The notes beneath the pieces were generated by a model. It did no database searches. It was not told where the DNA came from and saw only the letters and a program-made list of their open reading frames with translations. Made by a program: the position numbers and the translations under genes. A DNA stretch of 37,104 nucleotides. Source: Octopus sinensis. Taxonomy: Eukaryota. The stretch spans positions 1 through 37,104 of the forward strand of contig NW_021836825.1 of NCBI RefSeq assembly GCF_006345805.1. The letters run 5' to 3'. Below, one piece after another: positions 7,442 to 27,012 of the stretch; the stretch's first letter is position 1, and each line of letters opens with the position of its first letter.

Positions 7442-8217
7442 CTAGCATATCCATGTTGTCAAAAATGCTGACAGTTTTATTAATTATAGAAAATGGCACA
7501 TCAACACAATGGATGAAACCATTGCTAAATGTCAGCAATCTAGAAAATAAAAGTACATACACAGAATTGAAGCATTTGAAGTATTGTTCACATAATGTGT
7601 GTGTGTGTGTGTGTATACATGCATACACATATCACACACACATACACACACACACACACAAAGCGAATAAGTAGCAAGGATGTCAAAATATTAGTGCATA
7701 ATGGCCATTTCAAGCAGCTCCATTTAATCGATCAATGCAAACATTACATGAATTTGGAATAAACCAGGATACTCCATTATAATTTTTTAGCAAATTTTTC
7801 ATCAGTACTAGAGACTAAAATACATTGCTTCTTTTTGCTAAATTCATTTGCTAAATTCATTCTGCTACAATAATTTCGGAAAAAAATACCTAAAGCCTAC
7901 TTTAATTTAGAATGGCAGGAAATAAGGGGATCAAAGAAGAGGAATGATGATAGAGCTACATTCATCTTTATATAATAACTGCAACAAGTAAAAATTTTTT
8001 TAATTCTAGCATTGATACATTTGACTAAAAAATTTTCAAGGTGGTTCCTCAGCATGGCCACAGTCTGATAACTGCAACAACTAAAAAGGAAAAAAAATTC
8101 TGGGGTTGATATCTTCAACTAAAGATTCTTCAAGGCAGTGCTCCAGCATGGCTTCAATCTAATGACTGAAACAAGTAAAAGGTGAAAAAAACAAAAAAAT
8201 AATCGAAATATATAACT

Positions 8218-8290
8218 GGGGCTTTTGTCCAAGAGGCTTTTGTCCGTGGGGCTTTTGTCCGTGGAGCTTTTGTCCAAGGGGCTTTTGTCC
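8218..8290. repeat. 15-bp tandem repeat GGGGCTTTTGTCC(GT/AA), about 5 copies
   Basis: gcttttgtcc recurs with period 15 (8221, 8236, 8251, 8266, 8281). Confidence 0.9.
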
Positions 8291-8489
8291 TACACTCATT
8301 TTAACTGTGTAGTATCTCCATCACTCACACAACACGTGTAAACACACTTGCCACATTACGATCCAATCAACATAAGACCATTTCTGTCCCCAACCACCAT
8401 GCACAAAAAAATGAAACGTAAATTAAATGATACCCGTATTATTCAACCAAAGGATAAGAAACGGGAAATATGTACTTAAACTTGTAACA

Positions 8490-10865
8490 CAAAAAGTATG
8501 AAAAACTACATGTGCAAAACCATTTAACACCAGAAATGAATGGACCGGTACCCTATGAAAATGATGACCATCAAAATAAAGGGCCAGGCATTATTCCTCA
8601 TGTCCCACAAATAAAACCAAAAAAGAATAAACGGACATGTGAGGAATATATTTTAATCCTACATGCTTATTTTACAGCAGTGCTCCACCCACAGAATGAA
8701 AACACAACAACATATACAGATAAAATCTGGAAGAAAAATAACTTAGATAAAATTTGGGTACAGCAATGAATCATAATAAAGTAGCTAACAAAATAAAAAC
8801 AAGAACAAAAAAATACCAGAAATAGAAAATGAACACTTAAAAGGAAAAATACAACAGGAAAACGTAGATAGTAACCACACAGCAATAGCAAATAATATCA
8901 TAAGCACTGGGACTGTAAAATATGAAGACAGGTGTAACATGTCCAACAAAAATGAAGTAAACAACAAAAGACAACAAACCCAGATCATAAGAATGTATAA
9001 TGATGAGCAAAATGCACCAAGCCAGAACACCACAAACAAAAATATGAACAGGAGGGAATACGTACAAATCTAAAACATGGAAACAGCAAAGGTGAAACTA
9101 ATGATTATGATACTCTACAAATGAGTATAATCAAAGAATTGAAAGCCTCAGATCTCAATATGGGCCACCCAGAAATTAAAATTGATAATAAAACAACATC
9201 GATAATAAATAGCATGAACCTGGCTATCACAGAACTTATAGCCAGAGAAACAAATGTCAATATGACCAGGCTAAATGATATAATGTATGCAGTAACCTCT
9301 GTGACCAGAAAAGAAGCTGGTTACCTCCTAAAACCCACCCAAACAGGAGCATCACCACACAAACAAACTCTGTGGATATATAATATCCAGAAAAAATAGA
9401 AAATAAGAGAAAGGATCTGTCAATTCTTAATGAAACTAGTAGACAATCAACAGAAGAGAAGAAAAATCCAAGGCAACAAGAAGAGAAGAAAAATACTATG
9501 TAAATACAAAATTACAGAACAAGGTATATCTGAGGTAAAAGGACAGCTAAAGCAAGATATCCTCACCAAAGCACAAAGAATCCATCAGTATGAGAAACGC
9601 CAACATTTCTTTGAACAAAATGAACAGTTCAACTCTCATCCCAAAAGATTCTGCCAAGAACCTGGCAAAAATAAAATTGAGATCAATGCAGTACCAACAG
9701 CAGAAGTGGAAGAATTTTGGAAAGGAATATGGTTGGCGAAGGAACAACCACAGCAAAAATCTATCAAAACAATGAACATAGCACCTGAACAACAATTGAA
9801 GAGGTCAGCCAGGCACTGCAAAAACTAAGCAATGGGAAGGCACCCGGGCATGATAAGATCCCCAACTTCTGGTTAAAATACCTAACAGGAACATATAAAA
9901 CACTGGCTGAGAAATTTAATGTAATACTAGCAGAGCCAGAGTCAATGACTGAATGGCTCATGGAAGGGAAAACAATCCTAATTCCCAAATCCACTGAAAC
10001 AGCAAACCCATAAAATTATAGACCGATAACTTGTCTCCCTACACTTTACAAAGCCTTTACTGCAATAATATCGCAGAGAATGAGCAAACATCTGGAAGAA
10101 TATAACCTGTTTCCAGAAGAGCAGAAGGAATGCTGCAAGGGCTCATGTGGATGTAAAGAAGGGTCTAAGTATGGCCTGGTTTGATTACCAAAAGGTTTTT
10201 GGTAATATTCCCCACACATGGATCCTAGAAACACTAGCCATGAACAAGGTAGCACAAATAATCATAAGATATATAAAACATTCCATGAATAAATAGCAGT
10301 CAGTGCTACAGTTCCAGACAAAAAAGGGACTCATAAAAACCAAAGCCAATCCCTTTAGAAGAGGAATATTCCAGGGAGACATGCTCTCTCCACTCCTTTT
10401 CTGCTTGGCACTGACACCTTTATCTAACATGCTAAGCAGAAATGGATATGGATATAACTGTTATGACAAAATAATCAACCACCTGTTATATATGGATGAT
10501 CTAAAACTGTAAGCTACAAATGTTAAACAGCTGGAAACGTTACTCTAGACAACATGGATTTAACAAAGAAATAAGCATGAAATTTGGCTTAGAAAAATGT
10601 ACCAAAGCAACCTTGAAAAGAAGAAAACTAGTTAAGAGTAGCAACATCACACTAGATAAAGCAAATGAAATAAGAGAATTAGACCATAGCCAGGCATACA
10701 AATACTTAGGAATCAATGAACTAGATATAATACAACACACACAAATGAAAGAGAAGATAAGAAAAGAATACTATAGACGAGTTAGATTAATACTAAAAAC
10801 AGAGCTCAATGCAAAAAACAAGATAATAGCTGTCCCAGTTATAAGTTATAACTGGGTTCAAAATT
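8490..10865 (+). mobile_element. R4/Dong-like non-LTR retrotransposon, element A (N-terminus to RT, decayed, 3' part absent)
   Basis: N-terminal RTCEEYILILHAYF; GKAPGHDKIPNFW at about 9835-9870; NYRPITCLPT at about 10015; GIFQGDMLSPLLFCLAL...YMDDLKL (ORF 10303..10512); KFGLEKC...YKYLGI (10520..10867). Confidence 0.85.
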
Positions 10866-10869
10866 AACT

Positions 10870-12654
10870 AATCAAAATTATGGAATGTATGAATCTATTT
10901 GGTATTGCATCAAATGTTGAGCAATTGCTTGAAAAATGTATGACAAATTGGAGGATGGACCTGACAGCATTCAGAAGTTTAGGGACAGTAGAAATTAGGA
11001 AGGGCATCTTCCAAGGGGACTACCTGTCCCCACTAATCTTTGTACTGTGCTTGATACCACTGACACTGATTCTGAGGAAAGCAAAAGCTGGATATGTATT
11101 CAAAAGCCGCCAGTAAATAGTCAGCCCTTTGTTATTCATGGATGATCTGAAACTTTATGGTAAAGATGAAGCCCAAGTCAGTTCCTTCATTGATACAGTG
11201 TATACTTTCAGTGCTAATATCAGAATGAAATTTGGACTGAGAAAGTGTGGTGTATTAGTCTTGAAGAGAGGCAAAATCAAATGTATGGACAGGCTAACAG
11301 TACTGTCGGGAAGGTTATGAAGCAGATAGAAGAGATGGGCTATGAGTACTTGGGGATTTTGGAAATGGATACATTGATGGAGAAAGAAATGACAGAAAAA
11401 TTTAAGGTGGAGTACTTGCACAGTCTGAGACTGATCCATAAATCGATTGAAGCTATCAACCTAGTTTCACTCCTTAGATATGGAGCAAGAGTAATCGCAT
11501 GGACAGTAGATGAACTAAACAGCTTAGACAGAAAGACAAGGAAGTTGCTAACTAGGTATGGGACTCTCCACCCAAAAAGTAACACAGACAGACTATATGT
11601 ACCAAGAAAAAGAGGGGGAAGAGGACCTATTGGATGCGAACACAGCATTAAAGCAGAAGAAAACAACATAGCATGGTATGTAAAAAATGCTACAGAACTG
11701 TTATTATTAGAAGAATAATTGTGTAGGATGAAAGATTGCAATGATAAAGCAGTGTACAAGCAATTGAAAATGAATGAAACTGAAAATAGGTGGGTAAAGA
11801 AAAGAATGCATGGACAATTTCATAAGGATGTTAAAGATAAGACATACAGAGAAAAAAGATGGCTGTGGATGACTAAAAGTGATTTAAGACTGGAAACGGA
11901 GGCTCTAATCTGTGTTACCCGAGAGTAAGCACTAAGAACAAACTACATAAAATATAGAATAGACAACACACCAGAAAGTGATAAGTGCAGAATTTGTGGA
12001 CAAAATGGTGAAACCGTATGGCATATTACCTGCCAATGTACGCCACTAGCCCAGAAGGAATATAAGAGATGCCACAACAATATAGCAAAGCATGTCCATT
12101 GGACACATTGCAACAAGTATGGATTTGACAGAGAAAAAAATTTGGTATGACCACAAACCCGAAGGCATCATTGAAAATGATAATGCAAAGATCCTGTGGG
12201 ATTTTATGATTCAGTGCGACCATGAGATAGAGAATAGGAAGCCAGACATAGTCTTAATTGGGAAAGATACCAAACGATACTGGATCATAGTTATAGCGTG
12301 CCCAGCTGACAACAATATATGTGATAAGGAAGAAAGAAAAGTCAATAGATATGACAAGTTAGCTTGGGAGGTTAAGTAGTTGTTGCTGAGAAAGGTGGTA
12401 GTAGTACCAATAATTGTTGGAGCCCTGGGAACAGTGAGTAAAAACCTTGAGAAGTACATGGAACATATAGGGGCTGCAATAAGGGTGGAACACTTGTAGA
12501 AAACTGAACTGCTTGGGACCACTTGAATACTCCGGATGGTGCTTGAAAAATAAGGGGTGTTACCTTAGTTAGTTCAGTGGTAGTGAACAGCTGGCACTGT
12601 AGTACATCTGCAGTGTTAGAAGCTGTGTGAAGACTATAAATAATAATAATAATG

Positions 12655-12692
<38 letters not shown>
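10870..12692 (+). mobile_element. R4/Dong-like non-LTR retrotransposon, element B (5'-truncated: RT, zinc knuckle, restriction-like endonuclease, (TAA)n tail)
   Basis: GIFQGDYLSPLIFVLCL, LFMDDLKLY, KCRICG...ETVWHI.CQC, ILWDF.IQCD...RKPDIV...I.IACP, PIIVGALG; frame ends at about 12551; short 3'UTR, then (TAA)n at 12638-12692. Confidence 0.88.
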
Positions 12693-12696
<4 letters not shown>

Positions 12697-13250
12697 GCCC
12701 TGATGCAGTACCAGGCAGTGGTTCTCATGGCTTCTGATCTTAATTGACTGGATGTGTTATCATGTACATTGTTTTGTCTTGGTATAAAAGATGGGCTACA
12801 GCAAATATTCTGCTCAATACCACAGATTTGCTTGTCAGTTGTTTGACCTTAACCAGTTGAGCATGTCCCTTAGTGGCTGACGATATGTGCATCTCTGATC
12901 ACGAGCAGAAGTAGTGGGGGAGCATCATAGCCATGTGTTGAGAGGGATTCTTTGGGGTTTGAATAATTCACCTCTGGAAACATGGGTGGTTCATTCAACA
13001 TCCTTAAACAACCCTTATTCAGGGACCTTTTGAGCGGGATGGGCTACTCAACCTGAAGAAAATTCTAACTGGGCCCCACCTGCAAGGTCATGTGCTGTTT
13101 ATCTTTTTATGAGATCACAATATCGTGCACATATGGTTGTGATGCATGTGCCTGGTGTACCCTTATCAGACGGGTAGTCATGATGGGTATACCGGGCTTC
13201 GTATATTTTACCCCAGTGTCACTTTGATGGCATGAACTGCTCTCTCACTC
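12693..13250. mobile_element. About 560-bp non-coding interspersed element flanked on both sides by (AAT)n
   Basis: GC-richer block bounded by (TAA)n at 12638-12692 and (AAT)n at 13251-13265; no ORF of note. I recall it as an abundant octopus repeat, but this is unverified. Confidence 0.55.
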
Positions 13251-13299
13251 AATAATAATAATAATATCAAGCCAAAAGAAAGAAGGAAAATTTGCCAAC

Positions 13300-13413
13300 C
13301 TTTTTGCTTCCACACGATGTCTTATGTGCAGCATGTTGCTCTCTACAGGAATTGGCACCTTCCAGACATTGTAAATTTAAACACAGCTGAGATAAACTCT
13401 GATTGAAAAATAT
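13300..13413 (-). CDS. ADAMTS-like exon, 114 nt: IFFNQSLSQLCLNLQCLEGANSCREQHAAHKTSCGSKK
   Basis: Long polypyrimidine acceptor (ttctctttttattttgtAG) and weaker donor GTtggc; phase 0 to phase 0; Cys spacing 'C..L.C....C......T.CG..K' of the ADAMTS Cys-rich module. Confidence 0.9.
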
Positions 13414-13519
13414 CTACAAAATAAAAAGAGAAAACAAAAAATATAAATGAAGTGACTACAAAGAATTTGTTATATTCTATAAAATGTTTATTTGAAATAC
13501 TGTAGGTGCAAACATTCCT

Positions 13520-13670
13520 ATATGGTTAAGAAGTTTGCCTCCCAACCACATATTTCTGGATTCAGTTCCACTGTGTGGTACCTTGGCTAGATGTCTTCCA
13601 CTATACTCCTGGGCCAGCAAAAGCTTTGTCAGGGGATTTGATAGATGGAAACTGAGAGAAGCTTATATAT
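13520..13670 (+). mobile_element. 5' half of SINE family A
   Basis: Aligns to the head of the 26448 copy and ends in the internal (TA)n. Confidence 0.65.
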
Positions 13671-13820
13671 ATATATATATATATAATATATATATATATA
13701 ATTATAATGTAATGGATATGCATGATAAGTGCTTGGGCTAGTTTTACTACTAAAACTCTGACCTAAACTGCAACTAAAACATAAAACAAAAGTGGTGCTG
13801 TAGCTGCCTAGCAATGATGG

Positions 13821-15028
13821 TTATGATGGCTGAAAAGTTCAGAAGCTGACCAAGATACTCTCATAGAATGTGACCAGATGAGGTTTATTTTTCAACATAT
13901 CTCTTCTTGCAGTTCACACATATCTTCCATCAGTGTTGTAGTGCTTGAATCCTTTTGCTGAAGAAACTTTTATTCTGTTGGCCAAAAAAGTCATCAACAG
14001 TAGATATAACATCATCATCATTGCAATATTGCTTCTGGCAATCATCTATTGGGGTACAGATGATAGTCAGATGTGGTAAAATCAGATTAGGGGTGGGGTG
14101 ATCAGCCAGTTCAAAGCAACAGTTGCACACAGCAGCCATTGAAAGCAGGACTTGTATGCTGGAGTATTGTCTTGATGAAAGAAGACATCTTTTGTTAGTT
14201 TTCCTGGGTATTTGGTCCTAATAGGCTTTTGTAATTACCTCAGCAAGCTGGTGTGGCCCTTTTTAAGATAGTCAATAAACACAATGTCTTTTGCATCCCA
14301 AGAAACAGAAGCCATCATCTTCCCTGCAGATGAAACAACTGCAGGTGAGGAGGGAGTGTTTCCATTTGCATGGAATGTCTATTTGTCTCTGGCTCAAAGT
14401 GATGAACCCAACAATTGGGCAGCTTGGGAAAACATTCAAGGAAACTAGCTGGGTCTGGTTCAAACAATATCAGATTTTCCTGTGATGTGATCAGCCTGGT
14501 GCGCTTTTGATCAGGTGTCAGAAGATGTGGCACCCACTGAGCAGAAACCTTCATCATGTTAAGTTCATTGCGCAGAATATTCTCAACTCTCTCACGGGAT
14601 ATGTGAATAGCACTGGCTATTTGATTTATAGTCAATTGCCTCTCATCCATCACCATGTGGTGAACATGATTGATGTTTTCGTCTGATGGCAAATTCTTCC
14701 TTCACCTCCTAAATTCAGTCGCCCACTTTTGCATTATTGATAAAGTTGGAGCGTCATCTCATAAGGTATCAATTATGTCAGTATGAATGTCCTTGGGGAC
14801 ATACTTTTTCTGCAGGTCCTTGATAACATCACAATACCGAATTTTGTTCATTTTCAAGAGAAGTTGCTACTAATTACTTTTGAAGTCTTCTTTGAACAGT
14901 CAGATGTTAGTTTACCTGGCAGAAAATAAGTAGTTATTAATAAGTGTTGAAATTAAAGCATGCAAGATTTCACAGCTTTAGCATTACTCTTCATAGCCAA
15001 CCTATGACCTTTTCAATGCACCCTTGAA
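13821..15028 (-). mobile_element. Decayed mariner transposon (irritans/Hsmar2-like)
   Basis: ORF 14315..14692: KVSAQWVPHLLTPDQK...WVHHFEPET; decayed HPPYSPDL region in ORF 13930..14139; degenerate TIRs (ctgaaaagttc at the left end, gaccttttcaa at the right end). Confidence 0.8.
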
Positions 15029-15202
15029 TAAGTAGTTCTTCATTGAATAGGTATATATATATAGGTATATATATATGTTACTAAGGTATGTGTGTATATA
15101 TATGTATGAGTGTATATATATGTATGTGTGTGTATATATGTATGTGTGTGTATAAATGTATGTGTGTGTATATATGTAGTATATATATATGTATATATGT
15201 AG

Positions 15203-16729
15203 TCCTATTTATCATAGTCCTCCAGGCAATAACGGAGGAATTCAAGACAGGATGCCCTTGGGAGCTCCTCTATGCTGATCACCTTGCTCTAATTGCTGAG
15301 TCACTATCAGAACTGGAGGAGAAGTTTCAGGTGTGGAAACAAAGATTAGAATCGAAGGGCCTTAGAATCAACCTAGCCAAAACCAAAGTCCTAATAAGTA
15401 GGAAGGTAGACCAATCATAAACGACTTCAGGTAGATGGTCCTGCTCGATCTGTAAAAAAGGTGTAGGTAGAAACTCTATAAGGTGCACCAAGTGTAAGCT
15501 TTGGACACATAAGAGGTGCAGCAATGTCAAAGGAAGGCTAATTAGGAAAATAGTTTTTGTCTGTGGCAGATGCTCAGGAGCAATAAACACTGGAAATGTG
15601 CAGTGATCAACTTCTACCACGTTCCAGGGAGAAAAACTAGAAGTAGTTGATAGCTTCCGCTACCTAGGTGACCAAGTCAGTAGCTGGGGTGGGTGTGCTG
15701 AAAGTGTAACTGCTAGAGTAAGAATAACCTGGGCAAAGTTTAGAGAGCTCTTACCCCTGCTGGTGACAAAAGGCCTCTCGCTCAGAGTAAAAGGCAGACT
15801 GTATGATGCATGTGTATGTACAGCCATGCTACATGGTAGTGAAACATGGGCCGTGACTGCTGAGGATATGCGTAAGCTCACAAGAAATGAAGCCAGTATG
15901 CTCCGATGGATGTGTAATGTCAGTGTTCATAATTGACAGAGTGTAAGTACCTTGAGAGAAAAGTTGAACCTAAGAAACATCAGTTGTGGTGTGCAAGAGA
16001 GACGTTTGCGCTGGTATGGTCATGTGACGAGAATGGATGAAGATAGCTGTGTGCAAAAGTGCCACACCCTAGCAGTTGAGGGAACCTGTGGAAGAGGTAG
16101 ACCCAGGAAAACCTGGGACGAGGTGGTGAAGCACGACCTTCAAACTTTAGGTCGCACCAAGGAAATGACTAGAGACCAAGACCTATGGAAGTGTGCTGTG
16201 CGTGAGAAGACCCGACAAGACTAGTGAGACCATAACCCGTGGCCTCTACCTGGTATGTAGCCAGTCGACTTATACATACCTTTCCTTCTTGGGACACAAA
16301 ACTCCACTTGTGAAGACCCGTTGAGGCAAGTGAAAATCAAAAAATCAAAAAATCAAAATCAAATCAGATATCAGAAAGCAGAACCAAAATCGAAGTCGAT
16401 CAACATCAATGGAAATTGCGGCTGTGATACCAGTGCCGGTGACAAGTAAGCGAACCATCCGATTGTGACCGTTGCCAGCGCTGCCCCGACTGGCCTCTGT
16501 GCCGATGACACGTAAAAAGCACCATCCGTTCGTGGCCGTTGCCAGCCCCGCCTGGCCTCCGTGCCGGTGGAACATAAAAAGCACCATCTGTTCGTGGCCA
16601 TTGCCAGTGCCGCCCCGACTGGCCTCCGTGCCGGTAGCATGTAAAAGCACCATTCGTTCGTGGCCATTGCCAGCCTCACCTGGCCCCCGTGCCGGTGGCA
16701 CGTAAAAGCACCATCTGTTCATGGCCGTT
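15203..16729 (+). mobile_element. 5'-truncated RTE-clade LINE: RT C-terminal part to stop at 16224, then a 3'UTR with tandem repeats; interrupted at 16729
   Basis: LFIIVLQAITEEF...LLYADHLAL...KGLR.NLAKTKV; YLGD; HGSETW; RRLRWYGHV.RMD...GRGRPRKTW; few stops. Confidence 0.9.
16474..16729 (+). repeat. GC-rich tandem repeat in the RTE 3'UTR, units of 67/62/66/61 bp
   Basis: Units start at gccag 16474, 16541, 16603 and 16669. Confidence 0.85.
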
Positions 16730-17006
16730 TCAAAGATTTCACTGATATTATTCCAAGGGAATAAATGGTGTAAAACAATGTAATCTTCTCTTCAGGGAAG
16801 TGAAGAAATGAAACTCGTCAATAAGACATTTTAACAGAAAATGATGGATATGTATAGTGATTTACTGAACGCTATTAATATTGTTTGAAAAAAACGTTAT
16901 ACGATATAATGTCAGAAGTAGCCTATAGAAAGAGGAGGGATATTTTTTTAGTTAATGTTAAATATAAAAAGAAAATTAATGTTTAAATTATATATACTGA
17001 TAGAGA

Positions 17007-17579
17007 TTACTTATAGGAACTAAAGGTGTGTTTTTGCCAATGTTTACATCGATATGCACACTCTATAACTATGTTTACTAGGGGATTGTTAGAAAATATA
17101 ATGAAAAATAGTTCAGAATTACAGAGAAGATAGAATTCCTTGGCTTTGTCATAAGGTATTGAGATTGAGAGAATCAACCATTCTAAATTAAATTGTTCAT
17201 TGTGGTCTTTTAGATCCCAAATTAATTTACTGAGCCCAGTACTGTTACGTTTATTCCTATCCCTAAATGTTGAGTAATGGATAGAAATTCTTTTAGATAA
17301 CTCTAACGAGCTTCCAATGTAAAATCGTACTTTATTATGAGTACTGATTATACACTGGTATATAGAATTTTTTATTTTACAGTTACTTAACATAAACTTA
17401 ATTCTGTTGGAATTGACTTCAGATACAATAACCTTGTTATTAATATTTCTAGAAAGATGGATGGTATTAGCTAAATTAATGTTAGTATTAGTAAATGTAT
17501 TTATATTTAACAGGTTGTTATTATGTGAAGGGATAATTTGTAAGAGATTTTTTGTGTTGGAAAAACTAATCCTAACCAT
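17007..17579 (-). pseudogene. Penelope-like element C-terminal GIY-YIG endonuclease remnant (left-arm copy, 190-aa open frame)
   Basis: IIPSHN..LL...NSIYQC...FYIGSS...KRISIHYSTF...NSTGLSKLIWDLKD...LEWLIL...LLCNSE...CKH follows the PLE endonuclease pattern; no RT is present. Confidence 0.8.
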
Positions 17580-17701
17580 ATTTTTTCCGTGTTAATTGTT
17601 AACAAGGGGAAAATACACTCATCTATTTATATATATATATATATATAAGAAAGAAAGAAAGAAAGAAAAAGTGAAAAATGTGGTATCACTTTAGAATATA
17701 T

Positions 17702-18130
17702 AATTTATAATTCAATATAATTGCAGAGTTGTTAGATTAAGAAATAATGCATAGAGTCTCTCACAGTTGTTTCTAGACTAGCTGTGCATAGGGTGCATAA
17801 ATCATTGAGCAAAGATTTCCATATAAGCCAAACTGTCTTCAGAGAGGAAGAATCAAAGAATATTCTTAAAGGATATTAGTAGTTATCAGTTCTGTCATTA
17901 AAGAATTAATGAATATCCTTAGTAAAAGATAACAGTAGTTACCAATTCCATCATTGAATACTACTCGTTTTTTTACTAAGGATATTCTTTGATTCTTCAT
18001 AGTTGGCTTGTATGGAAATCTTTGCATAATGATTTATTACAGCATTTGCACAGCAATTCTAGAAACAGTATTATTTCTTAATCCCTTATTTACTCTAACA
18101 ACTCTGCAGTTACATTTGAATCATAAATTT
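17702..18130. mobile_element. Old MITE-like imperfect internal palindrome (left-arm copy)
   Basis: Self-complementary halves, e.g. tgcagagttgttaga/tctaacaactctgca and gaagaatcaaagaatat/atattctttgattcttc. Confidence 0.65.
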
Positions 18131-18210
18131 CATGCTCTAAAGTAACATCATATGTTTTGCTTGTTCTTTTTACCTTATCATCATCATCATCATTTAGCGT
18201 CCGTTTTCCA

Positions 18211-18413
18211 GCTCCGTCTGGCACCTGTGTGGGTGGCATGTAAAAAGCACCCACTACACTCGCGGAGTGGTTGGCGTTAGGAAGGGCATCCAGCCGTAGA
18301 AATACTGCCAGATCAGACTGGGTCTGATGCAGCCTTCTGGTTTCACAGACCCCAGTTGAACCGTCCAACCCATGCTAGCATGGAAAACGGACGCTAAATG
18401 ATGATGATGATGA
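18211..18413 (+). mobile_element. Resumed 3' end of the RTE LINE interrupted at 16729 (last repeat unit, conserved tail, (ATG)n)
   Basis: ccagctccgtctggcacctgtg...taaaaagcacc continues the 3'UTR repeat unit; the tail is homologous to 22193-22560 (reverse); ends in atgatgatga. Confidence 0.85.
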
Positions 18414-18460
18414 TAAGGTAAAAAGAACAAGCAAAACATATGATGTTACTTTAGAGCATG

Positions 18461-18886
18461 AAATTTATGATTCAAATGTAACTGCAGAGTTGTTAGAGTA
18501 AATAAGGGATTAAGAAATAATACTGTTTCTAGAATTGCTGTGCAAATGCTGTAATAAATCATTATGCAAAGATTTCCATACAAGCCAACTATGAAGAATC
18601 AAAGAATATCCTTAGTAAAAAAACGAGTAGTATTCAATGATGGAATTGGTAACTACTGTTATCTTTTACTAAGGATATTCATTAATTCTTTAATGACAGA
18701 ACTGATAACTACTATATCCTTTAAGAATATTCTTTGATTCTTCCTCTCTGAAGACAGTTTGGCTTATATGGAAATCTTTGCTCAATGATTTATGCACCCT
18801 ATGCACAGCTAGTCTAGAAACAACTGTGAGAGACTCTATGCATTATCTTAATCTAACAACTCTGCAATTATATTGAATTATAAATT
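18461..18886. mobile_element. Old MITE-like imperfect internal palindrome (right-arm copy)
   Basis: Mirror copy of 17702-18130. Confidence 0.65.
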
Positions 18887-18989
18887 ATATATTCTAAAGT
18901 GATACCACATTTTTCACTTTTTCTTTCTTCTTTCTTTCTTATATATATATATATATATAAATAGATGAGTGTATTTTCCCCTTGTTAAC

Positions 18990-19880
18990 AATTAACACGG
19001 AAAAAATATGGTTAGGATTAGTTTTTCCAACACAAAAAATCTCTTACAAATTATCCCTTCACATAATAACAACCTGTTAAATATAATACATTTACTAATA
19101 CTAACATTAATTTAGCTAATACCATCCATCTTTCTAGAAATATTAATAACAAGGTTATTGTATCTGAAGTCAATTCCAACAGAATTAAGTTTATGTTAAG
19201 TAACTGTAAAATAAAAAATTCTATATACCAGTGTATAATCAGTACTCATAATAAAGTACGATTTTACATTGGAAGCTCGTTAGAGTTATCTAAAAGAATT
19301 TCTATCCATTACTCAACATTTAGGGATAGGAATAACGTAACAGTACTGGGCTCAGTAAATTAATTTGGGATCTAAAAGACCACAATGAACAATTTAATTT
19401 AGAATGGTTGATTCTCTCAATCTCAATACCTTATGACAAAGCCAAGGAATTCTATCTTCTCTGTAATTCTGAACTATTTTTCATTATATTTTCTAACAAT
19501 CCCCTAGTAAACATAGTTATAGAGTGTGCATATCGATGTAAACATTGGCAAAAACACACCTTTATTTCCTATAAGTAATCTCTATCAGTATATATAATTT
19601 AAACATTAATTTTCTTTTTATATTTAACATTAACTAAAAAAAATATCCCTCCTCTTTCTATAGGCTACTTCTGACATTATATCGTATAACGTTTTTTTCA
19701 AACAATATTAATAGCGTTCAGTAAATCACTATACATATCCATCATTTTCTGTTAAAATGTCTTATTGACGAGTTTCATTTCTTCACTTCCCTGAAGAGAA
19801 GATTACATTGTTTTACACCATTTATTCCCTTGGAATAATATCAGTGAAATCTTTGAAACATGTGTTGGAAGTAAAAGTAT
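18990..19880 (+). mobile_element. 3' end of a Penelope-like element (GIY-YIG remnant, 3'UTR, hammerhead), right-arm copy
   Basis: Reverse complement of ORF 17007..17579 starting at ATG 19007, with 1-nt deletions near 19085 and 19333; followed by a hammerhead. Confidence 0.8.
19785..19872 (+). ncRNA. Type I hammerhead ribozyme, PLE-associated, with minimal stem III
   Basis: Stem I ACUUCC (19785-90) / GGAAGU (19867-72); core CUGAAGA (19791-97); stem II GAAGAUU/AAUCUUU extended by CAUUG/CAGUG; GAAA (19855-58); stem III ACA/UGU; cleavage triplet GUU (19864-66). Confidence 0.8.
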
Positions 19881-20009
19881 TTGAATTATACCTGCATTAA
19901 GCTCTATTTATTTATATATATATATGCAGGCAGAAATGTCGAGAAATTCAACAAAAGAATTAGTGACAGTGCAGGAGAATTCGAGGGCAGAATGGAAGGA
20001 TTGAACAGG

Positions 20010-21050
20010 AAGGAGTCAAGATGATATATCGTCAAGATCATCATCATCTATATATCATCTTGACTCTTTTCCTATCCAATCTTTTAATCCTGCCCTTGAA
20101 TTCTCCTGCACTGTCTCTAACTCTTCTGTTGAATTTCTCAACATTTCTGTCTGCATACACCACTCTGCTCTCAACACATCCATCTACTGCAAGCACACAG
20201 ACTCACACTTTTATCTTAATTTCTCCTCTTCTCACCCTACCCACACCAAGCTCTCGATTCCCTACCCCAAATTCCCTTGTCTATGCAAATTCTGCAGTGA
20301 CGACCATGACTTTGAGACCTAGTCTCAACTCATGGCTCACCACTTCACCCTATATGGATATCCCCCTCACCATTATCTACACTGCCCTTGTCTGGGCACA
20401 ATCTGTGGACTGTGCATCTACTCTTTCCCCTTGCACCTGCCCCACTCTTACCTGTCTGCTGTTTCCCCTAATCTACCACCACTCCAATGCACCATTCTCT
20501 GAGCCTTCTGGTGACTCTAGCCTAACTCCTCCACCTTGCACATCTTCCCTAAGTCACTCCTTCCTTCCTTCAAACAAGCCCAAAACCTGCATGACCTCCT
20601 GGTCCACAGTTTCTCCCCTACCCCTGTCTCTCAGCTTGTCTCCTTCCCTGCTCTTACCCACACTGTTGCATCTGCCCCTACCTCTCTAACACCACTATCC
20701 TCACTGGCACCCACTGCTGTCCCTATTACATCACTGACTCCTTTACCTGTACCTCCAGTAATGTTATTTACTGCATCTCCAACTCTCTCTCTGTCCTTCC
20801 CAGTACATTGGTCAAATGGGACGCTACTTGGCTGACTGTTTCATGGAGCACCTCCAAGACATCAGACTTGGCAATGACACCCTGGTCTCAGGCCACTTCT
20901 GCTCTACCTGTCAATCACTACATCTGTCTGTGTTTGGACTATCTCTGCACAGGGGCCACCTGGACTCTCACCTTTGCCGTGAACAGGAATTAAGCTTCTT
21001 CTTTTGTTCGTTATGGGCTCAACTTGCTTCCTCTCATCATCTGACATCAT
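20010..21050 (+). mobile_element. Decayed Penelope-like element fragment (RT thumb and GIY-YIG), a different family from the one in the palindrome
   Basis: Frame-hopping translation EFLNISV...SIYCKHTDSHFYLNFSSSHPTHTKLSIPY...CSDDHDF...GYP; FTCTSSNVIYCI; YIGQMGRYLADCFMEHLQDIR...VSGHF. Confidence 0.75.
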
Positions 21051-21499
21051 CCCACACACCTCCCACATTCAACTGCCCCTCCCCTTCACCTATACACCTG
21101 CATATCACCTACCTCAGTACCCTCACCACACACACCATTATGCAAACACCCATATTCACTGTTCAACTCATTACTCACTTCACATACCATTACACACACA
21201 TCTGCAAACACATTCCCACTTCACACACACTAGCACCAAACACTTTTCAGCACCCACACCACACACCATTATCCACACACTCTTCAATAGCGTCCCCACA
21301 CATACCACTATACAAGCACTCCTACACACTGTTCAACTTAGTACACACACCACACCATCATGCACACTCCCACACCCACACATAAACACATGCAACATGC
21401 ATAGACACAGATAACTTTTGCCCACAAGCATACACTATACACATGCACAACAATTTTATAAGACTGACAGAGGTAGTTGAGTTTAACTCAAGGAGTTAA

Positions 21500-21554
21500 G
21501 AGTTGCTGACAAGGATTAAGATGCTATGCATCAAAATCCAAAATCGTTTCATCT
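21500..21554 (+). ncRNA. Decayed (probably inactive) hammerhead ribozyme relic downstream of the second PLE
   Basis: CUGACAA (consensus CUGANGA); stem II GGAUU/AAUCC plus GAUGC/GCAUC; AAAA (consensus GAAA); stem I 4 of 5 bp. Confidence 0.5.
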
Positions 21555-22192
21555 AGGTAAGCTGGGGACTTACCTCCCTTTGCCAGTCATTCACTAAGTA
21601 AAGTGCTTTGTGGCTTTGGAGTTGTTTCTAGCTCTTGTTTCTAGTAATAGCTGGTGCTGGTCATTACCCTCTGTCACTTTTGTGACCTCTATTAATTTTG
21701 CCTATATGTGTGTGTATGTGTGTGTGTGTGCGTGTGTGTGTGTGTGTGTGTATGTGTGTGTGAGTGTATGTATATATGTAATATATCCAAGACATACATG
21801 CTACAATTCAAACGGAAATCAATTTGCCCTGAAGAAGTTTTTGCTTTCAACTTCATAAAGCAAATGTGCAAATTTGGATAGTGCAACAAACTGAAACGTC
21901 TCATAGGCAATATGACTATGATAATTAATTAATATATATATTGATTATCCTCTGTATGTATTCTCCATTTTTATTTATATTGTTAAAATTTTTTCTCCTA
22001 TACTGAAAATAATGGAAACCTCTATAGAGACAACTAGAATTTCAGAAGTCTAAGGTACTAATATCGAAGAAGAATGAATGATAAACTCTAGTACATATAC
22101 ACATATGCAACTTCCAATATCATTAATCAATATAGAGTGTATGCTGGTGTATGCTTGGATAGAACAACCTCTTTCCATACAAACACATATAT

Positions 22193-22560
22193 ATCATCAT
22201 CATCATCGTTTAATGTATGTTTTCCATGTTAGCATGGGCTGGACAGTTTGACTGAGGTCTAGAAAGCCAGTGGCTGCACCAGGCTCCAATCTGATCTGGC
22301 AATGTTTCTACAGCTGGATGCACTTCTTAACACCAACCACTCCGTGAGTATAGTAGGTGCTTTTTATGTGCCACTGGCATGGGAGCCAGTCAGGAGGCAC
22401 TGGCATTGGTCATGTTCGGATGGTGCTTTTTATGTGTCACAGGCACAGGAGACAGTCAGAAGGCCCTGGCAATGATCACATTTGGATAGTGCTTTATACA
22501 GGCCAGTCAGGGGGCATTGGCATCGACCACGTTTGGATGGTGTATTTTATGTGCTACCAT
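22193..22560 (-). mobile_element. 3' tail of the same RTE-type family (3'UTR repeats and (ATG)n tail)
   Basis: Reverse complement aligns with 18211-18413 and with the 16474-16729 repeat units. Confidence 0.75.
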
Positions 22561-22561
22561 A

Positions 22562-23578
22562 TAGCTTAGTTTTTCCTTGGGGCTGGCCAGATTGGAGCAA
22601 TCTCGAGTATAACCAGCCGAAATTGCAAAGATAATCTAGAACTCGACTGAGGATAGAAAACTTTGAATGACCCGTCCTTGTTTTCTTTGTATCTTCTGTC
22701 TGGATGTTTTGTTGTCTCTTTTTTGTATCACCTAACTGTCTGGATGTTTTGCATTCTTGTCCCACTTGTGTATTTTTTATATATAAAAAAAATATAGCAG
22801 CGTACATACACTTTGGTCTCTTATATGTAAGTATATATATATCTAAATTTTGTATGACTCTATTATTCTTTCTATTCTTTAATTCCTTCTTTCTATCAAC
22901 CCTTTCACGCTTACTTGTTCATTCCACTCTTTGTTCTTTTATTCCCCCTCTCTCACATTTCCTGACCTTCTCTTCATGCTAACTTTCCCTTCTCTCTTAC
23001 TTCACTGTATCCCTTTCATTTTTTTCTTGCCCCTCCTTAATTCTTCTATCTCTCTGCCTCTACATCTCTCTCCTCTCCCCACGTGACTGGTGTTTGGCCA
23101 AGCCTGACCTTTCTTTCTTGGTTCGACTCCCATCCGTGCAACATCTATATTCCTCCCTGTGTCTGTCTAATCCTATGTCCCTGCCATAAGGCTTTATTTT
23201 CACACACACCAGCTTAATTTAATTCATCCTTAGTCAAAAGACACATGTTATTATGTCCTGTTATTTGCATTTGTATTTGTGTAACATTCTCTGTTTTTTT
23301 TTCCGTGCTTGTTTTCATATACATTCGCTGCTTTCTTCCAAGGAATCTAATGCTCTTAGTTTAATTTTTCCTTGGGGTTGGCCAGATTGGAGCAATCTCG
23401 AGTATAACCAGCCAAAATTGCAAAGATAATCTGGAACTCGACTGAGGATAGAAAACTCTGAATGACCCATCCTTGTTTTTTTGTATCGTCTGTCTGGAAG
23501 TTTTGATGTCCCTTTTTTGTATCACCTAACTGTCTGGATGTTTTGTGTTCTTGTCCCATTTTTGTATTTTATATATAT
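22562..23578. mobile_element. Non-coding element with ~220-bp direct repeats (22562-22785 and 23357-23578) around a ~570-bp core
   Basis: The two copies align closely (ORFs 22547..22807 and 23356..23559 are near-identical); no TG...CA ends and no TSD seen. Confidence 0.7.
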
Positions 23579-23583
23579 ACATA

Positions 23584-24847
23584 TCAGGTCATCCCATAAG
23601 TGCTGTCCGATTTTACCTTTTTTAAAATTGAATGAAATTTAATAGTATTTTAGGATGTCTAATGGAATTAAAAATTATTATCATGCATTTGTGTACATTT
23701 AAACTAATTAAATATTATTTTACAGAATAATAGAATTAAAATTTCTTTGATTAAAACCCTTTCTAACATGGAAGTATCTAAAGAGCATTTGAGGCACATA
23801 ATGCTTTATGAGTACAAAAAAAGGAAACTCTGCAGCTGAAGTGACTCGAAACATACACTCAGTTTATGGGATAGAACGCTTGAATGAAAGAATTTGCAGA
23901 AGACAGTTTGCAAAATTCAGAAGTGGAGAATTTCAGCCTTAAAGATGAAGATCAAACAGGACATCCAGCTGAGTTTGATGATGAGATCCTTGAGGCATTA
24001 TTTGAAGAAAATCCTGCATTATCAGTTGAAGAATTGACAATAAAGCTTAGTTCAAACCATACAACTGTTCATTGTCATCTTCAACAAATTGGAAAGGTTC
24101 CTAAACTTGGAAAATGGGTGCCTCATGAATTGTCTCAATGCAATCACAAATCCTGAGTTGACATCTGCTCTTCTCTCCATTCTCATGAACTCATTTCACC
24201 TTTTTTGGATAGACTTGTGACTGGTGACAAAAAATGAATTTTCTGTCAAAATGTTAAATGTTGTAAACAGTGGCTTGGTAAAAGGGAAAAAGCTCAACCA
24301 CAACTGAGAAGGGAACTTCATGGGAAAAAGGTTCTTCTCTCTATCTGGTGGGATTGCAAAGGAGTAATTCACTTTGAATTGTTATCACCTAATGCAACAG
24401 TCAATGCTCAAGTCTACTGTCAGCTTTGAAGAAAAAAGATCCACTTTAGTGAATTGAAAGGGAGTAATGTTTCATCAGGACAATGCACAACCCCACACTG
24501 CAAATATCACATCACAGAAGATTGAAGAGTTTGGTTGAGAAAAAATTCCTCATCCACCTTATTCTCCTGACCTTGCTCCTTCAGACTACCATTTGTTTTG
24601 TAGTTTACAGAATCATTTGGGGGATGTAACTTTCGCAAGCCAGGAGGAGGTCGAAACAGACATTTCAGAGTTCTTCGCTTTGAAACCAAAAGAGTTTTAC
24701 ATTCATGGGATTAAACAGCTTGTAAATAGACAGAAGGAAGTCACAGATAATCAGGTAAAGTACAAGGATTATTAAATTTCAATTAAATATAACATTTGAT
24801 CACTTTTCTTTATTCAAAATTCAGACAGAACTTATGGGATGACCTGA
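23584..24847 (+). mobile_element. Full-length (1264 bp) decayed mariner transposon, Hsmar1/cecropia-like, with TA target duplication
   Basis: TIRs tcaggtcatcccataagtgctgtccga and its reverse complement (about 27 bp, 2 mismatches); TA on both sides; ATG at 23768, MEVSKEHLRHIMLYEY; GKWVPHEL; TGD.K; HQDNA.PH; HPPYSPDLAPSDYHLF; stops and frameshifts. Confidence 0.93.
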
Positions 24848-24991
24848 TATATATATATATATATATATACATATATATGTTTATCAGTTTGTTTTGCAAG
24901 ATTCCTGATGTGAAATCAGGTGTTGAAACAGATATTGTTGTATTTCGGGCTGGTCATTTTTTTTTTGCCAAATAAGCACACACACTATATA

Positions 24992-25063
24992 TAAAGTAAT
25001 AAACGAGTGAAGAAAATATATATACATATTTTTTTTTCTTTTCTTCACTCATTTATTACTTTA
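24992..25063. repeat. 25-bp inverted repeat with a 22-nt AT-rich loop
   Basis: taaagtaataaacgagtgaagaaaa (24992-25016) versus ttttcttcactcatttattacttta (25039-25063); one mismatch. Confidence 0.85.
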
Positions 25064-26447
25064 CTTATTTTATTATTTTAACTCATGACCATTGACCGGA
25101 AATCTTTCGTCACATATCTGTGATCTCTTTGGCAACGCTTTTCATAATTGTGTGTGTTCTTGCTCCACTTACTCCATTCTCTTCTTCTAAGATAGGTATG
25201 CATATGTTTGTGTCCTTGTTTTTGTGTGCACATGTTCATGTTTGTATATGTGTGTATGTATGCTTGTGTGTGTGTCATAGTGTTCAGCAGCAGTGTGACC
25301 TTCCCTTCAGCCCCATCCTCTCACTCCATTGTGCTGCTGCTGTCCTAAGACCTGAAAATATGGTACAGTTCCTGTATTCCTCTGTGTATGTGTGTTTGCC
25401 CATGGTGTTGCCATCATGGTTGTCACTGCCACTGCTGCTGTCATTATTAATCATGAATGCAATGAATATAACAGGAACAGGCTTACCTTGTATGAACTAA
25501 AGAAGCAAGGAATACAAATACTTCGAGATCAATTGATTTCACTTTTTATATGAATATATTTAAAGCTTGCCAACTGGATATATATAACATTTGAAGCAAA
25601 CCCATACACACACACAAGAAATTTCATGGACAGCCACAAAAATGTCAACAACATGATTAACAATGACAGCAGCAGCAGCAGTGACAACAATGGCAATAAC
25701 AGCTACCACGATGTAAAAGTGAACATTTGAGTGATGATAATGATGATGAAAATGATGATGATGATAGTGTTATTTACTGCTTTTTCATGACTGTGAAATC
25801 TTTTGGCTTCTAGATAACATTTTATGGCAATCTGTTTCGAGTCTGGAGTGTAATTTCATTGAATAAAATGAACATAGTTTCAGACAGATTACTATTTAGG
25901 AGTTAATGATTATAGTTTGATACCCCAATCAAGTAGTGATTGATACCACTTAAGCTCTTATCAAAACTGCTCTAGAGGTATGCTATAGACTTGCATTGAT
26001 GGATAACAATACCTGGTGAGATGCAATATTGTCAGCTTCTGTAGCACACACAAAAAGTAGTTTCCTGTTTTGAAGAAATTTTAAATACCTTGACAGATTT
26101 CAATTAAAGAAGGACAATTCCCAAGAAGTTAGACCAGCCATGGACAAGCAGTTTATGACTCAGTTTACGCCTAATGTCACATTTATTATTCACACTGGGC
26201 TTGCCAAATGAAAGGACATAATTATGCCCAGGATGCTACCCATACATACAGATGCACCAGAGTCATGGTAAGATGTGCTCAGAAGACACTGTAAAGTTGT
26301 TGGTGATAGGAAGGGCATCCAGATAAAGGAAACATGCCAATGTATGAGGCAAGACATAGTCCCCTATCTGTCAAGAAGGGGAGGAATCCTATATAAGAAC
26401 TGATTTAATTTAAGATAATCCTTCTAACTCATGTCATCACAGAAAAG

Positions 26448-26815
26448 TAGTGTGGCTGCGTGATAAGAAGTTTGCTTTCCAACTGCAATGGTTTCAGGTT
26501 CAGTCCCATTGCATAGCACCTTGGGCAAATGTCTCCTATTATAGCCTCAGGCTGATAAAAGCCTTGTGAGTGGATTTTGTAGATAGAAACTGAAAGAAAT
26601 CTATTGTGCGTGTGTGTGTGTGTGTATTTTTGTCCTCATCACCACTTGACATCCCGCATTGGTTTGTTTATACTTCAGCAACTTAGTTCAGCAAAAAAGA
26701 TCAAGAGAATAAGACCCAGGTTTAAGAAAATAAGTATTAGGGCTGCTTTATTCAACTAAACCCTTCAAGGCAGTGCCCCAGCATGGCCGCAGTCCAACAA
26801 TTGAGACAAGTAAAA
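26448..26815 (+). mobile_element. tRNA-derived SINE family A, full length
   Basis: tRNA-like head (gtggctgcgtgataag...ggttcagtccca), ccttgggcaa motif, internal (GT)n, tail ggcagtgccccagcatggccgcagtc and A-tract. Confidence 0.8.
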
Positions 26816-27012
26816 AAAAAATGCTGCTGCTGATAGTGGTGATGGAGCTGATGATGATGATGAGGTTGATGGGGTGTTTGACGTTGATGAGAACAATGGT
26901 GATGATGACAATAACTACAACGATGATGATGATAATGATGTAAATGATTATCTTTCGATAATTAACAGTTTAATTGTAATTGATAGTTTACTTCAATTAA
27001 ATACGAACTTAC

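Follow-up and report, generated by a model that had tools for sequence, protein, structure and literature searches.

The palindrome and its host LINE

We analysed an entire unplaced contig of 37,104 nt (NW_021836825.1, hereafter the window) from the long-read assembly of Octopus sinensis (GCF_006345805.1), which comprises 2,719,151,902 nt in 13,516 contigs. Positions 16727–19859 of the window form a near-perfect 3.1-kb palindrome, composed of a left arm (C′, 16727–18210, minus strand, 1,484 nt), a 170-nt spacer (B, 18211–18380, plus strand) and a right arm (C, 18381–19859, plus strand, 1,479 nt), and set in the 3′ untranslated region (UTR) of a long interspersed nuclear element (LINE). In our judgement the palindrome is probably a genuine inverted duplication that arose once and, on an evolutionary scale, very recently, through a two-step, microhomology-guided fold-back (snap-back) template switch and not by transposition.

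A repeat search of positions 15000–22000 returned a chain of inverted matches that make up both arms. Together with self-BLAST, it defined one antidiagonal match, 16727–18210 against 19859–18381, with 99.46% identity over 1,485 alignment columns. The near-perfect palindrome of the initial annotation, with arms of about 1.48 kb and a 170-bp spacer, is therefore confirmed, and its coordinates and junction strings are correct. Chance cannot account for an arm match of such length and quality. Aligned globally, the left arm and the reverse-complemented right arm differ by a single substitution (17020, C versus the complement of 19565) and six small indels (at 16943, 17250, 17500, 17658, 17742–3 and 17876), every one of which lies in a short A/T run or an AAGA microsatellite. 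The regions flanking the arms have no inverted similarity to each other, the antidiagonal of the self-BLAST being otherwise empty, and the 37-kb window has no second inverted repeat of 150 nt or more.

Upstream of the left arm lies a 5′-truncated, RTE-like LINE open reading frame (ORF) remnant (15208–16224, plus strand), which corresponds to the C-terminal part of a reverse transcriptase followed by a PHD-type zinc finger and runs in one frame with three in-frame stops. The ORF pieces in this frame are 15085–15420, 15421–15606, 15607–15936 and 15937–16224. Pfam detected RVT_1 with E = 7.7e-7 (15208–15417; the bit score of 29.5 is slightly below the Pfam cut-off of 29.6) and PHD with E = 5.7e-6. 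Only the C-terminal third of the reverse transcriptase domain is retained; the element is truncated at about 15208 and has no endonuclease region left. In the 3′ UTR, a GC-rich tandem repeat with units of 62–65 nt (16433–16729, plus strand, 4.6 units), delineated by Tandem Repeats Finder (TRF) and by alignment to 10 other copies, breaks off precisely where the left junction lies and forms the end of what we call segment A. The spacer B is single-copy and, judging from alignment to other copies, is the rest of the LINE 3′ UTR, continuing A. The final 34 nt of the LINE, including its (ATG)n tail, occupy 18381–18414 (plus strand): the similarity of other copies stops at query position 458, equal to 18414, and TRF reports (ATG)5.7. 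All aligned LINE copies terminate in (ATG)n where similarity stops, that is, in a trimer tandem repeat and not in poly(A). A short tandem-repeat 3′ end is typical of RTE elements. Octopus LINEs of the RTE clade with UTRs of about 600 nt are on record (PMC9115989).

When segment A (up to 16729) is rejoined to B (from 18208 onwards), at least 40 other genomic copies align straight across the joint with 89–94% identity, and the assembly has 121 occurrences, at three or fewer mismatches, of a 64-mer across the rejoined site. Because A and B are contiguous in other copies, they represent two halves of one LINE 3′ end parted by the left arm. This bears out the A–C′–B–C structure, created by inverted insertion into the LINE 3′ UTR, that had been proposed for the locus, as well as the interruption of the tandem repeat by the left arm. 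A LINE landing in an older palindrome and two abutting LINE fragments were both rejected, since A and B rejoin exactly. A heterozygous inversion mis-joined by the assembler was discarded too, because B comes after C′ in forward orientation and the joint between them is clean. The LINE tail and tandem repeat recur at 22193–22499 (minus strand), 3.8 kb past the spacer and in the opposite orientation; this further copy, with 82.5% identity across the final 183 nt, takes no part in the palindrome.

The flanks (7500–15200 and 19700–27000) have no near-identical copy elsewhere in the assembly, which returned only dispersed-repeat matches with 82–91% identity. The contig is thus the only representation of the locus, not a redundant haplotig, and neither an empty allele nor a haplotig of the palindrome locus was found in the assembly. 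An exact match to the 64-mer at C4:92231668 was considered as an empty allele and rejected: the locus-specific 52-mer joining the LINE tail to its flank is absent there, so that site is another LINE copy. This 52-mer occurs twice in 2.72 Gb, once per arm. The 28-mer of the right (inner) junction is unique in the same 2.72 Gb at two or fewer mismatches, apart from one 5′-truncated LINE tail on C6 (L036, G000:C6:111413827; locus positions 1500–1730). The first letters of the C6 copy, CCAGCTCCGTCTGG, correspond to the same point as the start of spacer B. Its adjoining flank ends in ...GTGTCCGTTTT, resembling the LINE's own CCGTTTG, and the flank end also matches the inner junction by chance, as GTCCGTTTT. 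The C6 copy looks like a homeology-guided 5′ junction left by retrotransposition.

Source arm, junctions and age

Beyond the LINE tail, the right arm is made up of several unrelated repeats. A foldback resembling a miniature inverted-repeat transposable element (MITE; 18415–18918, not assigned to a strand) is 70% self-complementary and 72–80% similar to a dispersed family of about 280 bp that matches on both strands. It is followed by the microsatellites (TTTC)n and (TA)12 (18920–18963, plus strand; TRF) and by one copy of a dispersed repeat of about 915 bp (19006–19915, plus strand), which has at least 40 copies with 88–94% identity. The arm boundary at 19859 falls about 56 nt inside this last repeat and is therefore not a repeat terminus. 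On the right, the repeat extends about 56 nt beyond 19859, exactly as seven or eight further copies do; in the left arm it breaks off at the equivalent position, next to the LINE tandem repeat. Since the repeat is unbroken only past the right arm, the right arm is the native source and the left arm the copy, in agreement with the polarity assigned initially. Relative to the consensus of the 915-bp family, 24 private substitutions and a 3-bp deletion are common to both arms, which shows that the arms are copies of each other and not independent insertions. Insertion of the same repeat twice in opposite orientations was accordingly rejected, the arms sharing not only these private changes but also the MITE-like part and the LINE tail. 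An Rfam scan (hammerhead, tRNA-like) gave no match.

The earlier description of the duplicated block as a mosaic holds for the LINE tail, the MITE-like foldback and the microsatellites. The Penelope-like end that it also included is not supported for the 915-bp repeat; the Penelope-like fragment sits beyond the arms, at about 19923–21400. We also agree that the arms are not terminal inverted repeats (TIRs) of one transposon: the arm end is no repeat terminus, and the junction between LINE tail and flank is found nowhere else in the genome.

The left (outer) junction reads ...GGCCGTTT/CAAAG, the slash marking the joint. A 4-nt microhomology, GTTT (16727–16730), is common to the target (...GGCCGTTT/GCCA...) and to the reverse complement of the right-arm end ...CTTTGAAAC (19851–19859, with AAAC at 19856–19859). 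At the split point, 10/10 aligned LINE copies read GGCC(G/A)TTTGCCAGC, and the uninterrupted site of other copies is GGCCGTTTGCCAGC. Sharing at this junction had been noticed before; its length is GTTT and not GTT, since every other copy reads GGCCGTTTGCCAGC. Beyond these four nucleotides, a 12-nt comparison revealed no extended inverted repeat at the outer junction.

The right junction reads ...GCGTCCGTTTTCCA/GCTCC, and three nucleotides (CCA) are ambiguous between the arm end and the target, as the initial annotation had it. They are embedded in a longer homeology: the arm end at the inner junction, GTCCGTTTTCCA (18199–18210), is the reverse complement of the LINE-tail motif at 18381–18392 and matches the target GGCCGTTTGCCA at 10/12 positions. 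Equivalently, an imperfect inverted 12-mer, GGCCGTTTGCCA and TGGAAAACGGAC (18381–18392), complementary at 10/12 positions and conserved in 10/10 aligned copies, brackets the spacer. Its presence in other copies implies that the ancestral LINE 3′ UTR already had an imperfect 12-nt inverted repeat around the present spacer. The probability of at least 7/9 matches beyond CCA is 1.3e-3 by a post hoc calculation. In an ensemble fold of the reconstructed 225-nt ancestor, treated as single-stranded DNA with DNA parameters, the ten complementary positions of the 12-mer pair with probability 0.42–0.61. A pre-existing inverted 12-mer at the inner junction is a hallmark of fold-back or template-switch inverted duplications. 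Given the 10/12 homeology, what had been taken for a 1-bp deletion of G is better read as the replacement of a target G by a source T.

The target has been altered by at most 1 nt, with segment A and the sequence to the right of the palindrome (segment D) intact on either side. In line with the initial annotation, there is no target-site duplication (TSD); the apparent CCGTTT direct repeat around the insert was already present in the source. Examples of junction k-mers are CATGGCCGTTTCAAAGATTTCAC and TAGCGTCCGTTTTCCAGCTCCGT. An exact look-up of three junction-spanning ORFs yielded no record, which is uninformative either way.

Compared with each other, the arms show one substitution in 1,484 nt (0.07%). 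The arm's copy of the 915-bp repeat had diverged privately from its family by 2.8% (24/848) before the duplication, and the LINE 3′ end differs from its closest relatives by 4.4% (20/458); (TA)12 and (ATG)5.7 have the same length in both arms according to TRF. Taken together with the three stop codons of the LINE ORF, the contrast between 0.07% and the values of 2.8% and 4.4% indicates that the duplication is far younger than its parts. Barring homogenisation of the arms by gene conversion, these figures would make it at least about 40 times younger than the component insertions. The event had been called very recent before, and arm identity supports this; the accompanying argument from the instability of palindromes is weak for arms held apart by a 170-nt spacer (PMC7999016). 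Inverted Alus stall eukaryotic forks when the spacer is 12 bp, not when it is 52 bp, and wild-type yeast stably maintains a pair of inverted 6-kb Ty elements with 280 bp between them (PMC7999016). Four of the arm differences can be polarised by comparison with further members of the 915-bp family (16943, 17020, 17250 and 17500 versus 19643, 19565, 19335 and 19086); in every case the right arm carries the derived state, the left one matching the family.

Origin of the palindrome

The A–C′–B–C–D product, with its single-copy spacer between short inverted borders, microhomologies of 3–4 nt, no TSD and almost no loss of target, carries the signature of fold-back or template switching. The ancestral order would have been A (LINE body and tandem repeat), B (170 nt, remaining LINE 3′ UTR), C (LINE tail and flank) and D. 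A 3′ DNA end would then have formed in the last repeat unit, between ...GGCCGTTT and GCCAGC..., through either a double-strand break or a stalled nascent strand. Under the break route, the break would fall between GTTT and GCCA, and at least 1.65 kb of the right-hand end would be resected. The 3′ tail of this end (...GCTGG(C)) could fold onto the CCA of its own strand, 170 nt away, CCA being the remnant of the pre-existing 10/12 inverted 12-mer that would close a stem-loop. Following the trimming of a 1-nt flap, 1,479 nt of its own strand would be copied, and the new 3′ end (...GAAAC) would be released and captured by the left break end (...GTTT) through the 4-nt microhomology.

An identical product could arise at a replication fork by a switch between the leading strand and the lagging-strand template, in a manner resembling origin-dependent inverted-repeat amplification (ODIRA), fork stalling and template switching (FoSTeS) or microhomology-mediated break-induced replication (MMBIR). 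The nascent top strand would leave after GTTT and copy the complementary strand from 19859 back to 18381, whereupon the new 3′ end, GTCCGTTTTCCA, would re-anneal at 10/12 positions to the departure site. In one orientation of the fork route, this re-annealing would explain why the switch back occurred at exactly the departure site. The enzymes, the direction of synthesis and the choice between break and fork are what we infer from the product, as is the correspondence of the contig to the animal's true DNA.

Several observations weigh against a fold-back template switch. As far as the sequence goes, its break-based and fork-based routes cannot be told apart. Copying 1.48 kb and returning within 1 nt of the start is long for templated insertions of the Pol-theta type, and microhomology of 3–4 nt is weak. 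No second instance of the inner junction was found in the assembly among thousands of other copies of the host LINE tail; as the junction does not recur, the inverted duplication is not a regular property of the host LINE family. The junctions are known from the assembled contig alone, and this contig is an unplaced one of 37 kb in an assembly of noisy long reads. Six of the seven arm differences are 1–2-nt indels in short runs, and all polarisable differences are derived on the right. This pattern suggests errors left in the long-read consensus rather than mutations; in the animal the arms may be identical, and the local assembly quality seems imperfect. That the derived states are one-sided could mean that consensus errors cluster in a single arm, or that the template copied was a homologue or sister bearing the ancestral alleles. 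Finally, the palindrome centre (18293) is only 259 nt off the contig midpoint (18552), a coincidence with a chance of about 1.4% and without explanation. It could hint at how the contig was constructed; a whole-read foldback does not explain it, the flanks not being inverted copies.

The rival that draws on these points is an assembly or library artefact, in which chimeric molecules or reads, due to in vitro strand-switching by a polymerase or to mis-joining, created a palindrome absent from the animal's genome. We regard this as unlikely. It would suit a small unplaced contig among the 13,516 of a long-read assembly, a palindrome nearly centred in it (259 nt off), indel-dominated arm differences typical of unpolished long-read consensus and the absence of a second allele from the assembly for comparison. 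Microhomology is likewise a product of strand-displacement switching in vitro, and artefactual foldback reads have been described (PMC12870357, PMC6218980). However, known foldback and missed-adapter reads are palindromic throughout and have no native spacer (PMC12870357), whereas here just 1.48 kb is inverted and the spacer is native LINE sequence; no SMRTbell adapter was found, and the flanks are not inverted copies. Whole-read foldback and a missed adapter were rejected outright, the inversion being confined to 1.48 kb per side of a native spacer. An artefact would also require two precise junctions, one of them within a pre-existing inverted 12-mer. Moreover, with unique flanks the contig should have normal read depth and not derive from one odd read, the arm identity of 99.5% implies a multi-read or polished consensus, and foldback reads are almost nil in the PacBio data of PMC12870357.

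The remaining alternatives accept the palindrome as real. It might be old, its arms held identical by arm-to-arm gene conversion and perhaps retained for a long hairpin RNA made from a read-through transcript. Near-identical arms around a spacer are also seen in palindromes maintained by conversion (PMC6790999), and all polarisable differences are confined to one arm. Nevertheless, with equal (TA)12 and (ATG)5.7 lengths and only one substitution, youth is the simplest reading; the arms are built of dead repeats with no sign of transcription or function, and the structure is unique in the assembly, all of which makes great age improbable. We give still less credence to two bolder proposals: that a retained, conversion-homogenised palindrome yields a transcript folding into a 1.48-kb perfect hairpin RNA, which could feed small RNAs that silence the MITE family and the 915-bp repeat or serve as a substrate of ADAR in a cephalopod, or that a conserved stem-loop at the base of the LINE 3′ UTR is a recurrent, fold-back-prone fragile site that seeds palindromes.

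It is very doubtful that the switch took place at LINE insertion, with the 3′ end of the cDNA (...GCTGG) snapping back on CCA, copying the tail and 1.45 kb of target flank and returning to the RNA. The geometry and both microhomologies would fit target-primed reverse transcription proceeding leftwards through B, and the same motif is the site of a homeology-guided 5′ junction in a 5′-truncated copy elsewhere. Against this, the LINE copy is old, with 4.4% private divergence, three stop codons and a 5′ truncation, and the 915-bp repeat of the arm was already 2.8% privately changed before the duplication. Arms dating from the insertion should differ by several per cent, not by 0.07%, and the junction is absent from other copies of the LINE family. 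That the arms are long TIRs of a foldback-type or other DNA transposon inserted in the LINE is scarcely credible. A 3.1-kb unit with inverted ends in a region rich in transposable elements might suggest it, but the arms are a mosaic of unrelated repeats whose inner ends carry the host LINE's own tail, and their outer end lies inside the 915-bp repeat, which runs on at the right only. In addition, there is no TSD, the arm 52-mer is confined to the window and the junction 28-mer is unique.

Read as a fold-back template switch, the event adds one clear-cut case to a known class of rearrangements and does not reveal a new mechanism. If real, it would be an unusually legible natural duplication of this type on the kilobase scale, with both breakpoints resolved to the nucleotide and source and copy distinguishable. 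The nucleating short inverted repeat can be identified because thousands of sister LINE copies give the ancestral state. It would also illustrate how, in the germline of an animal, a long palindrome can arise from a structured 3′ UTR of a retrotransposon, and it would provide a polymorphic marker worth genotyping. In practice the locus can serve to test quality control in the assembly of repeat-rich cephalopod genomes; our analysis adds a reconstruction of the event at nucleotide resolution, in which the inner junction falls in an inverted 12-mer that predates the duplication.

Neighbouring elements and comparison with known systems

Other repeats surround the palindrome. To its right is a 5′-truncated Penelope-like fragment (19923–21400, plus strand), preceded by an 89-nt inverted repeat (19923–20011 and 20069–20157, 87%). 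Reading by eye, we recognised in it a stretch resembling a reverse transcriptase thumb, FLNISV...TSIYCKHTDSHFYLNFSSSHP (ORF 20005–20322), and a frameshifted GIY-YIG motif, NVIYCIS ... QYIGQMGRYLADCFMEHL (about 20757–20900); Pfam gave no match for the fragment. On the other side, ORF fragments at 13930–14701 (minus strand) were read by eye as the remnant of a mariner/Tc1-like transposase (e.g. QLTINQIASAIHISRERVENILRNELNMMKVSAQWVPHLLTPDQKRTRL), for which Pfam returned only a weak match of helix-turn-helix type. Further out, positions 23570–24885 hold a dispersed repeat of about 1.3 kb with mutually inverted ends of about 45–70 nt (at least 40 genomic copies with 87–91% identity), and positions 10877–13266 a dispersed repeat of about 1.8–2.4 kb with many copies at 82–88% identity.

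Foldback and other long-TIR transposons are recognised by multiple copies with shared termini, TSDs and coherent arms, none of which was observed here. FoSTeS/MMBIR and the template-switch mutations of quasipalindromes involve leaving a template, re-priming on the opposite strand nearby, copying and returning. Template-switch mutations typically span tens of nucleotides, and Pol-theta inserts fewer than 50 nt. The octopus palindrome resembles FoSTeS/MMBIR templated insertions in being a four-point event with microhomology at both joints that creates or extends a hairpin; unlike template-switch mutations and Pol-theta inserts, it involves a copy of 1.48 kb.

With foldback, missed-adapter and multiple displacement amplification chimeras the locus has in common an inverted repetition in sequence derived from long reads (PMC12870357; PMC6218980). 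Such chimeras are symmetric over the whole read and lack a native asymmetric spacer, whereas here an internal 1.48 kb is inverted, with two junctions and no adapter. The sex-chromosome palindromes maintained by gene conversion likewise have arms at least 99.5% identical around a unique spacer, but their arms range from 10 kb to megabases, bear genes and are conserved across species (PMC6790999), whereas those described here consist of 1.5 kb of dead repeats.

In ODIRA, leading-to-lagging strand switches occur at short interrupted inverted repeats (Brewer et al. 2024, PMC10766186), and the eukaryotic Okazaki initiation zone measures 100–200 nt (PMC7999016). The octopus locus is similar to ODIRA and intra-fork switching in that a junction lies at a short pre-existing inverted repeat whose 170-nt interruption is close to the size of that zone. 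It differs from ODIRA, whose product is an inverted triplication that includes a replication origin and has interrupted inverted repeats at both junctions: here we found two copies, and an outer junction with a 4-nt microhomology only.

In fold-back inverted duplications, the spacer is single-copy and has short inverted sequences on its borders (Hermetz et al. 2014, PMC3907307), and foldback priming with trimming of the foldback flaps by Pol delta has been described (Al-Zain et al. 2023, PMC10622511). Like the fold-back duplications formed at double-strand breaks, the octopus palindrome combines inverted and direct copies with a single-copy spacer, has short inverted sequences at the boundary between spacer and duplication, and shows the loss of a small heterologous flap and microhomology of a few nucleotides. 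Its second junction returns within 1 nt of the start, for which second-end capture would account. Classical fold-back duplications are large and terminal, and pass through hairpin-capped or dicentric intermediates with adjacent deletions or translocations; the octopus palindrome differs from them, in that only 1.48 kb was copied, nothing was lost and the chromosome stayed intact.

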